Below are positions 1,660-8,814 of a stretch of 64,000 bases of DNA, in pieces. Location: NCBI GenBank assembly GCA_001949185.1, contig BDGG01000002.1:5198448-5262447 (forward strand), written 5' to 3'. Positions within the stretch are counted from its first letter, which is position 1, and each line of letters opens with the position of its first letter. The stretch is from Ramazzottius varieornatus (lineage: Eukaryota > Animalia > Tardigrada). The notes beneath the pieces were generated by a model. It was not told the DNA's origin. It saw nothing but the letters and a program-made list of their open reading frames with translations, and ran no database searches. The position numbers were made by a program, and so were the translations under genes.

Positions 1660-2612
1660 TCAGTAAAAAAGACTAATAGCGTACAGGTGCTTTTCATGAG
1701 CAGATAGGATTCTGATACAGTTAAATTGGAACCGGACCAACAGTGCGTAGTTACCGTTAGAAGCTGCGAAAGCTATCAATTACTGCCAAGTTTAGATGAT
1801 AAATCGCCCTGAGCCACACCTTGACACTACTTTCTGCGCCACACGCAGTCTTCACTGCGGCCTTGTAATCACAATGGACGATCGTTAGTACCTTAAAAAG
1901 ACATACCAGGTTGATCAAATTGTGTCACAAATTGCGTTTGACATAGGACAAAAACCAGAATACAAACGATCAGAAATTGTCAAAGTTCACTTATGGCATA
2001 TATATATACGACTGTCCGGCACCTCGGTGTCCACACTGTCTGCTCATTCTGTGAGTTCGAAGCTAGAAACTACGTCGTCGTCGTCTTTCATAACAATTCA
2101 TTATGCTCTCATCCTGGCACCAGAGGTCCAGAAAATGAAGCGGGAACATGAACTGGCGACCCGATTAGGATTGTGGTTGTGATTGTTATCGTTAGGCTGA
2201 CAATCAAAACTACACACTAGATTTCAATCAACAGATTGTTTGCGCGTGATCGGAAATGACCAATGTTTGCCAGTTGGCCCCCTTGGTAGGTGTATTCTCC
2301 AAGGCCCCGCCTTCTGGCCCATGCTTATCTGGGATTGGGAAATTCCAAATTAAATCTGCTGAATGTTTCCTTAACAGCTCGTGCTCATTCAGTTCCCTCA
2401 CGGATTCCTGTTTCTTTACACAACATTCGCTTGTAGCGGTCTTGGAGTCGCATGACTGGAAGCCTGTAGGCTGTTTGGAGAAAGTTAAGACAATCCGTAA
2501 GTGCTCCAAAGTCATGTGTTTCTCAGTTCTAACTCAAGGTGCGGCGTTGTATATAAGGTGCCGTCATCACCTCCTTACATTGCAGCTGCTCTCCTGCGAG
2601 CCCACCTCTACA

Positions 2613-3583
2613 ATGTCCAGATACCTGCTGCGCGATGTCCAGGCTGTATTACGCGGAGTTCGCAAAGTGGCCGAGAGTAGCTTAAAGCTGGAGACGGAGA
2701 AAGTCAGTCTGCGGCTTGGTGACTTTCGGTCACAGCCTTCCCTTCGCAGTGTGCCTGCTTCCCTCACAAGTCGATCACAGGTAAGACATTCAGTCTCTTT
2801 GATAGTTTAATGGTGTCTTTGATAGTTTACGGTGATGCGTAAGTTGCAGTACGTGCGGCAATTCTAAGGGAAAATTGAGCCCGTATCATCTGATTGTAGG
2901 CATTTAGCCTACAGGAGATAGCTGCTCGTGCCGGAGTTGTTCTGCGAGGAGTGCAACAACAGTTCCGAAACGTCACTGGAGTGAATGCCGCTCCTGTTGT
3001 AGCCTTTGATAATGGATCAGTTCTATACAGTGAAAGAATCCACTCGCAGAGTTCGCAGAAGCAGGCCCCGACTACAGTACCAACAGGATCCGTCAGCAAT
3101 TCCCCTCAACCGGAAGGAAAGGCAAACGAAGCTGCTGAACGCGCAAAACAGTTTGTAAGGCATATCACCTTTAGCTTCATCATTTCATTATCTTGAGACG
3201 CTTGATGTTGGCAGATGAATCCTCCAGTTGCGCCAATGGATCCTGTCGACAAGAATGAATTTGTCGCCATGCCGGAGATGGGTCGTAGTAATGGAAATGG
3301 AGAAAACAAACAAGCTGCTGATTTCGTAAGAAAAAATATTAGTCGGGTTGCTCTTCCTGCTTTCCTCAGTTATTCAACTACGAACCTGATCATTCTTTCT
3401 TTGCAGATGAAAAACCAAGGTGACACCGATATGGATTCCCAGTACGCGCCTGATTCATCGAAGAACACGAAATCGGTTCCCACGAAGGAAATCGTTGCTG
3501 AAGATGGTTCGATGAGCATTGAGGATATCAAGAAAGCTACGCAGGTTACTCCTGGAGTTGCAGTTAAAAACGAGGGTGTTTAG
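2613..3583 (+). CDS. MAHS: Mitochondrial-abundant heat-soluble protein (tardigrade MAHS), 236 aa
   Basis: Exons 2613-2780, 2900-3154, 3215-3325 and 3407-3583 (all phase 0, GT-AG) give MSRYLLRDVQAVLRGVRKVAESSL...AFSLQEIAARAGVVLRGVQQQFRNV...IKKATQVTPGVAVKNEGV*. This is recognised from memory as Ramazzottius MAHS: basic amphipathic N-terminus with a hydrophilic low-complexity C-terminal half. Confidence 0.92.
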
Positions 3584-3606
3584 ACGATCCTCTTTCATGA
3601 CTGCAG

Positions 3607-6054
3607 ATACGAGTACGCCACTATTCTTCACAAGCTGGAAAACGTCCCGATAAAGAGCCAAAGAAAGTAGCCGAAGCTCTTGAGCACCAAACGGTAAACT
3701 TTTTTCGTCCTTTTTGCAAGCTGTCAGCAGCACCGTTTGGTATATGAAATATAGCATTGTGTATTCGTTTTTAGTAATACGGAGAGATTAAGGCTTCTCT
3801 TATGTGCGCCGATATGCACAAAACAGCGGACAAGCTGTCTTTCTTTCGAACTTTGTTGTGCAAAGATTTTGCTTGTACATAGGGAAACATTTTGCTCAGA
3901 TGATTTTCATGGTGTGATTGAGTTCTCAAATTTCAAGATGCTTCTTGCATTCACGAAGAACACACTTTTCGCTATCTTCAATGCCAGACGGTGATGCTTG
4001 TCAGCAGGCTTCGTTTCTTCGAATGGCTCTCTCTAATAGTACTTCCTGGTTGTAGCTTGGCGCGAAATCCCGGGAACGAAGAGTTCCGGCTTCCAGGACA
4101 GCTCGGTAGGTCAGAAAGTGTACATCTTCCGTCTCAAGTACTTCGCAATCGCCGATCGGACTAACGTGTAGGCTGGCGACATTCGGAGGCTTGGCGGCAG
4201 GGCTAGGTTTGGGTGCTGTGGCTGAGGTGACCAGGCGAACTCTCGGAATGGGACCGAAAGGTAAGTGGATCTTCTTATCTGGGCTACGCTTGTGATGCGA
4301 CTGGAAGTTCTTGCAGTCCTTATTCACAGATGGTCCGGCTACGCTTCTGGACAAGTCAGCTTTCCTCACGGAAGCGAATGCGGAGCGCATTGTGGAAACA
4401 CTGTGCCGAGTGCGTGGAGCTGCACTCAAGCTGGGCCAAATGATCAGTATTCAGGGTACGCATTCCGTCAAGAATTTGCCGTCACCTTATAACAGATGTG
4501 ACTTCGAGCAAGCAATTTCGGTTTTCTGTGTTGATGTCCTGTCCTCTGCAGATACTTCCTTGTTGAGACCTCAAATTCGTGAAATTTTCGAACGTGTCCG
4601 ACAAAGTGCGGACTTCATGCCAAAAAGCCAGATGGAAGTGGGTATCGCGTTATTTTGTTTCGTATGGTTGGGGAGGAGTCTGGGCTTCTTTCGATTGTCT
4701 TGTGCGAAGTTCGAACGCTAGCTCTCTTTTGTTTTGTAGAAAACCATGCAAAGAGAGCTTGGGCCTAACTGGAGAACCCACCTTCCGGAGTTCGATGACA
4801 AGCCTTTCGCCGCCGCGTCCATCGGTCAGGTTCATCTGGGTAAAACCAAGGACGGAAAGGAGGTCGCTGTGAAGATCCAGTACCCTGGTGTTGCCGACAG
4901 TATCGATAGCGATATAAGGAACCTGATGGGTATACTGAACATGTGGAACATCTTCCCTAAAGGAATGTACATGGACAACCTGATGCGAGTGGCCAGGTCG
5001 GAGCTGGCGTGGGAATGTGATTACGTCCGAGAAGCTGACTACATGCGGCAGTTTAGGTATGTCCTATTTTTGATAACGTGTGCTGATTGTCTGCTTTGAA
5101 GAGAAGAATATTCATTGAAGGGACATTTATGCAAACGACCCCGTCTTCGTGGTGCCGAACGTGGTGGATGAACTGTCGAGTAAGCGGGTCATAACAACGG
5201 TATATGTTTATGGAGAAACACTCGACAAAGCATTGGCACTGGACCAACCCACTCGTGATTACGTATGTCCTGTATTTGTCCTGTATAATAATTACTGATA
5301 TAATCAATCAGCCAGTATGACTGTAGAGGACCCGGTTGACACTCAGTTAATTGTTTGCAGGTTGCCACGAACTTTCTCCGGTTATGTTTCGAGGAGCTCT
5401 TCACGCATCGCTTGATGCAGACTGATCCCAACTGGGCGAACTTTCTCTATAATGACTCGACCAAGAAGGTACACGTATCCCTAAACGATCTGATGTTCAT
5501 GGCATCGGGACGAAGTTATCCAAGACAAGTTCACACGATCAAGGTTCCTCTCCAGATTTACCTGCTGGACTTTGGCGCCAGTCGAACGTTCGACAAGAAA
5601 TTCACAGACAGCTATATTCAGATTATCAAAGGAGCGGCAACAGGAGATCGAGATCTGGTACTGACAAATTCGCAGAAGCTTGGTTTTCTCACTGGGATGG
5701 AGACCAAGGTTAGTTCATTTCTTTTACAAGAAACTTTCTGATGAAGTTTGAGGTGCTTTCTGCTGATAGGCTCTGGCCAATGCACATATTGACGGAGCAA
5801 TGATTCTTGGAGAACCTTTCAAGACGAACGAACCGTTCGACTTTGGCACTCAGGATATCACAACGAGAATCCACAAGCTCATACCTCTACTGGCCGAACA
5901 ACGGCTGACCCCGCCACCGGAAGAAAGCTACTCCCTACACCGCAAACTTGCCGGCGCTTTCTTATTATGCTCGAACATGAAAGCGCGAATCAGATGCAAG
6001 GACTTCTTCGACGATATCTACAGTAAGTATCAAAAAGATGCTTCAGGGAGATGA
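3607..6054 (+). CDS. COQ8: Atypical UbiB-family kinase COQ8/ADCK3-4 (coenzyme Q biosynthesis); 5' exons appear to be shared with MAHS (start 2613)
   Basis: Exons 3607-3693, 4056-4105, 4172-4260, 4330-4455 etc. encode [24 protein letters not shown], the KLGQ motif, A-rich loop [34 protein letters not shown] and [18 protein letters not shown]; stop at 6054. Confidence 0.93.
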
Positions 6055-6185
6055 TCTCGACCGATTGTGCCCGTCAGAGTGTGGGATATTTGGGTTTTAG
6101 TTGTTTGTTGGTCTTTTTGTTTTATATATATTATGTGATACGCTTCTGTTTTGGTGAGCAACTTTTAGTACCATTTGTATGAAAA

Positions 6186-8814
<2,629 letters not shown>

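Follow-up and report, generated by a model that had tools for sequence, protein, structure and literature searches.

The tardigrade protectant MAHS is probably the leader region at the N-terminus of COQ8, produced as a protein in its own right

The MAHS protein of the tardigrade Ramazzottius varieornatus is mitochondrial when expressed as a GFP fusion and heat-soluble as a recombinant protein (Tanaka et al., 2015, PMC4326354). Its gene lies on the forward strand of a 64,000-nucleotide (nt) stretch of the R. varieornatus genome, here called the window, immediately upstream of the sequence for the kinase-like protein COQ8. The protein read from the window is RvMAHS, with the same length of 236 amino acids (aa), and its N-terminal and motif strings equal those of RvY_05157 (PMC13006486 supplement). 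Region 2613-6054, which holds both coding regions, was read directly, and a splice model was built locally to establish frame and length. The results lead us to conclude that MAHS and COQ8 are very probably two products of a single gene.

The coding sequence of MAHS starts with the ATG at 2613, and consists of four phase-0 exons ending in a stop codon at 3581-3583. Exon 1 (2586-2780, coding for 56 aa) contains an N-terminal motif of COQ8 and the mitochondrial leader common to MAHS and COQ8. Exon 2 (2900-3154, 85 aa) holds the published 'MAHS motif', exon 3 (3215-3325, 37 aa) begins with MNPP, and the common part of exon 4 (3407-3544, 46 aa) has ...IKKATQ as its last residues. At this point there is a candidate alternative donor, CAG/GTTACT at 3544/3545, which together with the acceptor CTGCAG ending at 3606 defines a 62-nt intron within the last MAHS exon (3545-3606, GTTACT...CTGCAG). 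If the intron is kept, the protein ends with the tail VTPGVAVKNEGV and a stop. Its removal is needed for the COQ8 reading, and brings ...IKKATQ, in phase 0, next to an 87-nt exon of 29 aa (3607-3693, donor ACG/GTAAAC). This linker exon is coding in the COQ8 mRNA, and part of the 3' untranslated region (UTR) in the MAHS mRNA. It is followed by a long COQ8 intron of 362 nt (3694-4055), across which it is spliced, again in phase 0, to the beginning of the conserved COQ8 sequence at 4056.

The COQ8 core has nine exons, at 4056-4105, 4172-4260, 4330-4455, 4552-4637, 4740-5056, 5121-5262, 5361-5468, 5556-5708 and 5770-6054 (stop codon 6052-6054), with joints that are all found in RNA and are all GT..AG. 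With the linker exon, the COQ8 part (3607-6054) therefore comprises 10 exons, and is open for 480 aa, in which the first methionine is residue 72. There is no ATG in any frame in either the linker exon or the exon starting at 4056, and in-frame stop codons (tga 3598-3600 and tag 4053-4055) lie just before each of these two exons. The joined model, consisting of MAHS residues 1-224, linker and COQ8, is 704 aa long; it was assembled for counting length and frame only, and all homology searches were run exon by exon. The sequence features described in the first-pass annotation of this DNA were all present on direct reading and in the local model, at the coordinates given there, and its statement that COQ8 has no in-frame ATG of its own is borne out by the two stop codons and by the position of the first methionine.

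The COQ8 core contains a transmembrane segment, a KxGQ motif and an ABC1/UbiB kinase-like domain. The ABC1 family PF03109 is matched with E 4.3e-34 on 4740-5054 and 4.4e-4 on 5556-5708. The sequence AALKLGQ (KxGQ-type), the lysine of VAVKIQYPG, MQTDPNW and DFG are all present, at invariant columns of an alignment of 34 COQ8 sequences. The transmembrane exon is at 4173-4259, downstream of the N-terminal motif at Met1. Identity to animal COQ8 is 55-59% over 7-9 exons, and the best-matching proteins are named COQ8A or COQ8B, which indicates orthology to COQ8 rather than to ADCK1, 2 or 5. The COQ8 exon, MAHS exon 2 and an exon-1 profile were each matched once in the genome (55.8 Mb), always at this locus. 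Other ABC1-domain loci exist in the genome; the one that could be aligned shares only 24% identity with tardigrade COQ8, and is therefore another ADCK paralogue.

Several ways in which COQ8 might be given a start of its own were considered and rejected. The ATG at 3938 (MLLAFTK..., donor 3990/3991) would reach 4056 out of phase, and no RNA joint is seen for it. Neither Hypsibius nor Paramacrobiotus conserves Met72, and the ATG at 3597 is out of frame. For trans-splicing of a spliced leader, there is no leader-like loose contig end at 3607 or 4056, and no report from tardigrades was found in the literature. As read from the sequence, the only COQ8 gene is thus without a start of its own, while the only COQ8-type N-terminus is to be found 1.3 kb upstream, as exon 1 of 'MAHS'.

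The evidence for this N-terminus is as follows. The largest COQ8 exon (4740-5054), used as query for phmmer, yielded 150 representative sequences, which included no tardigrade sequence of more than 65% identity; annotated proteins of R. varieornatus were not among the results of any of the searches. In a dozen of the 150, the very N-terminus aligns with exon 1 of MAHS, always from COQ8 residues 1-11 onwards. A hidden Markov model (HMM) built on residues 1-60 of 50 full-length COQ8 proteins from animals matches exon 1 with 35.6 bits (E 1.4e-8 at Z=20000), the best unrelated match among 1,452 open reading frames of the window having E 5.5. Comparison of the exon-1 peptides of three tardigrades with 34 non-tardigrade COQ8 sequences using hhalign gave a probability of 96% and E 1.2e-9, columns 1-50 aligning to columns 1-50, Met1 to Met1. 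Exon 1 carries M1, D8 and G15, which are invariant in the 34-sequence non-tardigrade alignment. MAHS exon 1 is thus identified by homology as the conserved N-terminus of animal COQ8, and the description of the MAHS family as having no similarity to known proteins does not hold for this exon.

The remaining MAHS exons are a fast-evolving hydrophilic extension. Exon 2 has a weak match to a second N-terminal block of COQ8, in the same order (hhalign E 0.005, columns 5-30 to columns 72-97); the matches are at consistent positions in many arthropod COQ8 proteins, and share the pattern E-x3-R-x-[GS]-x-V-x2-G. Beyond this block, no counterpart of exons 2-4 could be detected outside tardigrades, and MAHS was not matched by an HMM of the COQ8 region that precedes the membrane segment. 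A resemblance of SIEDIKKATQ in exon 4 to the vertebrate COQ8A motif TAEDIEKARQ was dropped as evidence, such a motif being found in only two of 52 COQ8 proteins and at a different distance.

Of the words that make up the stretch, about 0.6 occur in some 20 RNA-like runs from six studies, a fraction in keeping with spliced RNA. For mapping onto 2200-6400, four runs were used, each from a different study. All of these are assembled Logan contigs, which drop minor variants, so that a missing junction is weak or no evidence of absence; contig depth figures were left out of any ranking of isoforms. The contigs confirm all three MAHS introns, and also a joint 2496^2586 (GT..AG, runs X3 and X8) to a 5' UTR exon at 2352-2496, which is the first exon of the shared transcription unit. 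In run X8 a template-switch (SMART-type) oligonucleotide abuts 2352, marking this position as an mRNA 5' end. The contigs of two runs start at 2586 or 2588, which may be a second transcription start or a mere break in the assembly graph. A TATA-like sequence, TATATAAGG (at about 2553), is situated within the 5' UTR intron (2497-2585) of the transcript form that starts at 2352.

Contigs of the MAHS type are unspliced from 3407, across the 62-nt intron and the linker exon, to a poly(A) tail, which is at 3972 in run X6 and at 3974 in run X8. Both positions are inside the long intron 3694-4055. The MAHS mRNA therefore ends by polyadenylation within an intron that the COQ8 mRNA removes, and it was assembled as a complete polyadenylated transcript in independent studies. 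The poly(A) site has no canonical AATAAA or ATTAAA in the 40 nt upstream, whereas the homologous introns of Hypsibius and Paramacrobiotus do contain AATAAA. The COQ8 mRNA is represented by the junction 3693^4056, seen in two runs (X6 and X8), with unspliced read-through at this position in X1 and X3. The contig with this junction begins 29 nt upstream of the donor, at a branch point of the graph, and passes through all nine further COQ8 junctions and beyond the stop codon. It is at 3693 that the COQ8 contig diverges from that of MAHS, and the two RNAs share sequence at least as far as 3664-3693. In run X1 a single contig spans exon 1 to the end of COQ8, and is unspliced across 3407-4104. Of the two forms, the short one seems to be present in greater abundance. 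No junction 3544^3607 was seen in the contigs of the four runs, all of which retain 3545-3606, although a minor variant would be lost from such contigs. Nor was there any exon-skipping joint to 3607 in any of the four runs, the contigs being unbroken through exons 1-4.

A similar gene organisation is found in other tardigrades. A profile search using the conserved exons only identified an NCBI protein of Paramacrobiotus metropolitanus, named 'atypical kinase COQ8B, mitochondrial-like' (RefSeq, here P0185, 717 aa). Exons 1, 2 and 3 of R. varieornatus match its residues 1-47, 60-143 and 144-180, with E 3e-8, 2e-10 and 5.5e-7 respectively. This model contains MAHS-like exons, linker exon and kinase together, and splices out a homologous intron of 90 nt. 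Its N-terminus is identical to that of the P. metropolitanus 'MAHS' LOC129591308 (PMC13006486 supplement), in a 2026 comparative paper (PMC13006486) that treats the MAHS family as unique to tardigrades and nowhere mentions a kinase. The genomic locus (L001) consists of four MAHS-like exons, of which the last ends in ...LKKVQK, the 90-nt intron, a 36-aa linker exon ending in ..KQT/GTAAAT, a 797-nt intron containing AATAAA, and the COQ8 core. When the first 267 residues of P0185 were used as query, only P0185 itself was retrieved, which is uninformative, the sequence being too divergent for the size of the database. It is worth adding that in the Paramacrobiotus locus there are two GTT donors of phase 0 in tandem, at a distance of 9 nt (L001 5497-5512), AAG/GTTCAA and AAA/GTTACC. 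RefSeq takes the upstream donor. In position, it is the downstream donor that is homologous to the one in Ramazzottius and Hypsibius; the products would differ by VQK.

In Hypsibius exemplaris, COQ8 has been deposited as 'AarF domain-containing protein kinase 4, partial' (ADCK4), with 424 aa. Directly upstream there is a gene for 266 aa without Pfam domains (L002 2792-5198), with exons at 2792-2977, 3589-3855, 3987-4082, 4207-4239 and 4913-5032. These are followed by a 70-nt intron (AAG/GTTCCA...TATAG), a 32-aa linker exon at 5103-5198 (RFYSSLAG...EKQT/GTAAAT), and a 374-nt intron with AATAAA, after which the sequence continues with LGPKSRERKVP... The 266-aa 'MAHS' model thus splices out the 70-nt intron, includes the linker and stops at the long intron, because the exon lengths 62+89+32+11+40+32 add up to 266 and the gene ends at 5198. 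Exon 2 is 45% identical between R. varieornatus and Hypsibius, and the homologue of exon 4 ends in ...LKKISK. Exon 2 of Hypsibius has a NAGNAG acceptor (CAGCAG; L002 3580-3590), and its 33-nt exon 4207-4239 has no equivalent in Ramazzottius; the next intron (4240-4900) is filled by a low-complexity repeat rich in TGTCTG.

Linkage of MAHS to COQ8 in other species had been proposed in the first-pass annotation as a check, and the linkage and the order of exons do recur in both Hypsibius and Paramacrobiotus. The arrangement is more than chance, because the donor, the short intron with its stop codon, the linker and the long intron are all found again at the homologous place in both.

It could be argued that MAHS and COQ8 are simply independent neighbours, and that fused gene models and spanning contigs are read-through artefacts of a compact genome. 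This was the assumption of Yoshida et al. (2017, PMC5531438), who reported that BRAKER, guided by RNA-seq, had predicted MAHS and its neighbour as one fused gene in R. varieornatus and H. dujardini alike; the curators judged the fusion to be a misannotation and split the model. A contig that crosses two genes is indeed no proof of one transcript, MAHS mRNA has a poly(A) site of its own, and 3544^3607 is missing from the contigs. However, two separate genes would leave COQ8 with no start codon, no leader and no N-terminal motif, the lack of a start or leader extending to all three species, while the motif is present in exon 1 of MAHS; COQ8 of Hypsibius could only be deposited as 'partial'; there is a single COQ8 in the genome; and the same layout is found in three species. 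We therefore consider two independent genes to be most improbable.

The short intron is of particular interest. Its homologues in Ramazzottius, Hypsibius and Paramacrobiotus are 62, 70 and 90 nt long, in three different frames, and each contains an in-frame stop codon, so that in all three species COQ8 can be read only after splicing. The donor is GTT in all three, which departs from the consensus at +3 and +5, and its position and phase are also conserved. The departure from consensus is explained by GTT doubling as a valine codon: reading through past the donor gives ...KATQ-VTPGVAV-KNEGV-stop in Ramazzottius, ...KISK-VPPGVPV-KADSFS-stop in Hypsibius and ...KVQK-VTPGVAV-AFDS-stop in Paramacrobiotus. 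The consensus V-[TP]-P-G-V-[AP]-V is therefore retained in three species from two superfamilies, while the rest of the intron cannot be aligned.

This conservation bears on whether COQ8 contains all of the MAHS exons. Since all of these are phase 0, a join from the donor at 2780, 3154 or 3325 to the acceptor at 3606 would in each case be in frame, and COQ8 might share exon 1 only, or exons 1-2 or 1-3, with the donor at 3544 unused. Such an arrangement would fit with the limitation of strong non-tardigrade COQ8 homology to exon 1, and with the missing 3544^3607 junction. On the other side stand the unbroken contigs of the four runs, the Paramacrobiotus RefSeq and Hypsibius 266-aa models, both of which include all the exons and splice out the short intron, and the GTT donor, conserved in sequence, position and phase. 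Skipping of MAHS exons is thus very unlikely, although it may occur in minor forms, and we infer that the donor at 3544 is used in R. varieornatus.

The intron-encoded tail also provides information on the short product. In the seven shared codons, six of the 7 third positions are variable, compared to two of the 14 first and second positions (Fisher one-sided p = 0.003). As the changes are mostly at third codon positions, the tail has the pattern of translated sequence, and on this evidence the short product looks to be under selection too. The gene structure described here could be correct and the short mRNA nevertheless be a by-product, or a regulatory sink that limits COQ8, the 236-aa protein having no function in the animal. 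MAHS was picked from abundant transcripts and was missing from an earlier heat-soluble proteome, and its reported protective effects come from heterologous over-expression, all of which would be compatible with such an origin. It does not explain why the tail is conserved at the amino acid level, nor the conserved placing of poly(A) sites in the long intron (with AATAAA in both Hypsibius and Paramacrobiotus), nor the occurrence of the short mRNA as a complete polyadenylated transcript in independent studies. A functionless protein therefore seems unlikely.

On the basis of these observations, there is good reason to believe that MAHS is the N-terminal leader region of the sole COQ8 gene, made as a free-standing protein. 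Some points weigh against this: the phase-0 exons, which permit other in-frame joins to 3607; the missing 3544^3607 junction, though only weakly; the verdict of the curators on the fusion; the fact that splicing of the short intron by RefSeq and BRAKER is known here in the form of gene models; and the choice of the 236-aa protein by transcript abundance and its study as recombinant protein or GFP fusions. Nevertheless, the central proposal of the first-pass annotation, that MAHS is the N-terminal part of COQ8 and that one locus gives two products, is upheld by the homology of exon 1, the single copy, the gene structure in Paramacrobiotus and Hypsibius, and the BRAKER fusion. So is its suggestion that the supposed orphan originated from the leader of COQ8, by which desiccation protection might, as it proposed, be coupled to coenzyme Q synthesis. 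That MAHS-GFP is targeted to mitochondria in human cells also fits a COQ8 leader.

The two products most probably arise by two routes. In the first, which gives the abundant mRNA, the 62-nt intron is retained, the donor at 3693 is not used, and the transcript is cleaved and polyadenylated at about 3973 in the long intron. Translation would then stop in the retained intron, to give the 236-aa MAHS, consisting of residues 1-224 and a 12-residue tail. In the second, both introns would be removed, and the 224 residues, the 29-residue linker, and the transmembrane and UbiB kinase-like region would form a precursor of about 704 aa. An RNA that retained the short intron but was spliced downstream would carry a premature stop before exon junctions, and would presumably be degraded; the short RNA would survive by ending before the downstream junctions, thereby escaping nonsense-mediated decay. 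Decay of other retained-intron RNAs would explain why the stable mRNA couples retention to intronic polyadenylation. The first-pass annotation had suggested either intron retention or alternative 3' end formation for MAHS, and splicing for COQ8. Of this, retention is confirmed, and is combined with polyadenylation in the next intron (3972/3974), while the spliced form 3544^3607 was not seen in the contigs.

Intronic polyadenylation and intron retention are a known route to truncated isoforms, for example soluble isoforms of receptors. As in those systems, an intronic poly(A) site here competes with splicing, and the short mRNA encodes the N-terminal part of the protein followed by a few intron-encoded residues. 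The difference is that two successive introns are involved, the first supplying the stop codon and a conserved peptide, and the second the poly(A) site, and that the short form seems to predominate.

The long product resembles animal COQ8 (COQ8A/ADCK3 and COQ8B/ADCK4) in having PF03109, AALKLGQ, the transmembrane segment FGGLAAGLG, and M..D..(V/L)LRG(V/L)..VA at Met1. It also has a poorly conserved extension before the membrane segment, as they do, of about 250 aa here compared to about 130-270 aa in most of those checked. It differs in that the tardigrade extension is also made alone, with a high level of mRNA and a private intron-encoded tail of 12-14 residues; a short isoform was not looked for in other animals.

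The MAHS family has been described as a separate gene unique to tardigrades (PMC4326354), and papers on MAHS up to 2026 continue to call it so. According to the present analysis, exon 1 has homology to COQ8 of other animals, and what was called a 'gene' is the 5' portion of COQ8. Annotation pipelines have come across the fusion before, and it has been mentioned in print once, but no more than as an error: the locus and model in Yoshida et al. (2017) are the same as ours, but were split by hand, with the neighbour unnamed and no biological meaning drawn. In our literature search no paper was found that joins tardigrades with COQ8 or ADCK. The type of mechanism is known; what is new is the identity of the two products.

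The COQ8 3' UTR (6055-6285) overlaps the 3' end of a convergent cathepsin-like gene on the minus strand, and the COQ8 RNA contigs run into exons of this gene through a CT..AC joint, 6285^6344. The loose end past COQ8, read on the minus strand, contains a papain-type motif, HGVLIVGYG. A Peptidase_C1 gene likewise converges on the 3' end of COQ8 in Paramacrobiotus, matching the order in the window, and this syntenic neighbour carries Inhibitor_I29 and Peptidase_C1 domains.

The linker exon starts with R-H-Y-S-S in Ramazzottius (IRVRHYSS; 3607-3630) and with R-F-Y-S-S in Hypsibius (L002 5103-5120), which resembles an R-3 mitochondrial processing site. The site is not kept in Paramacrobiotus, where the linker starts PWTSSAAS... 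and has no arginine at this place.

One can go further, and imagine that a regulated switch between splicing and intronic polyadenylation trades COQ8 for free MAHS as the animal enters anhydrobiosis, and that the precursor is in addition cut in the linker at R-[HF]-Y/S-S, releasing a MAHS-like polypeptide in the mitochondria. We regard this combined proposal as rather doubtful. If it were true, the effects of MAHS in human cells would be mimicry of the homologous N-terminal region of human COQ8A/B.

MAHS is a named 'tardigrade-unique' protectant, which has already been put into human, yeast and worm cells. Identification as the COQ8 leader would take it off the list of orphan genes, and would explain why there is exactly one MAHS copy in each species, as well as its targeting to mitochondria. 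It would also correct gene models in at least two genomes, in which COQ8 is 'partial', and MAHS is either truncated artificially or concealed by the name COQ8B. It raises the questions of how the ratio of the isoforms compares between active and tun animals, and of whether the effects of MAHS in human cells are exerted through the partners of COQ8A/B or coenzyme Q. More generally, it would be an example of how a supposedly new protein can arise, namely from an existing disordered N-terminal extension that is made free-standing. MAHS would thus appear not to be a gene unique to tardigrades, but to be one of two alternative products, the short one, of a mitochondrial gene of ancient origin.

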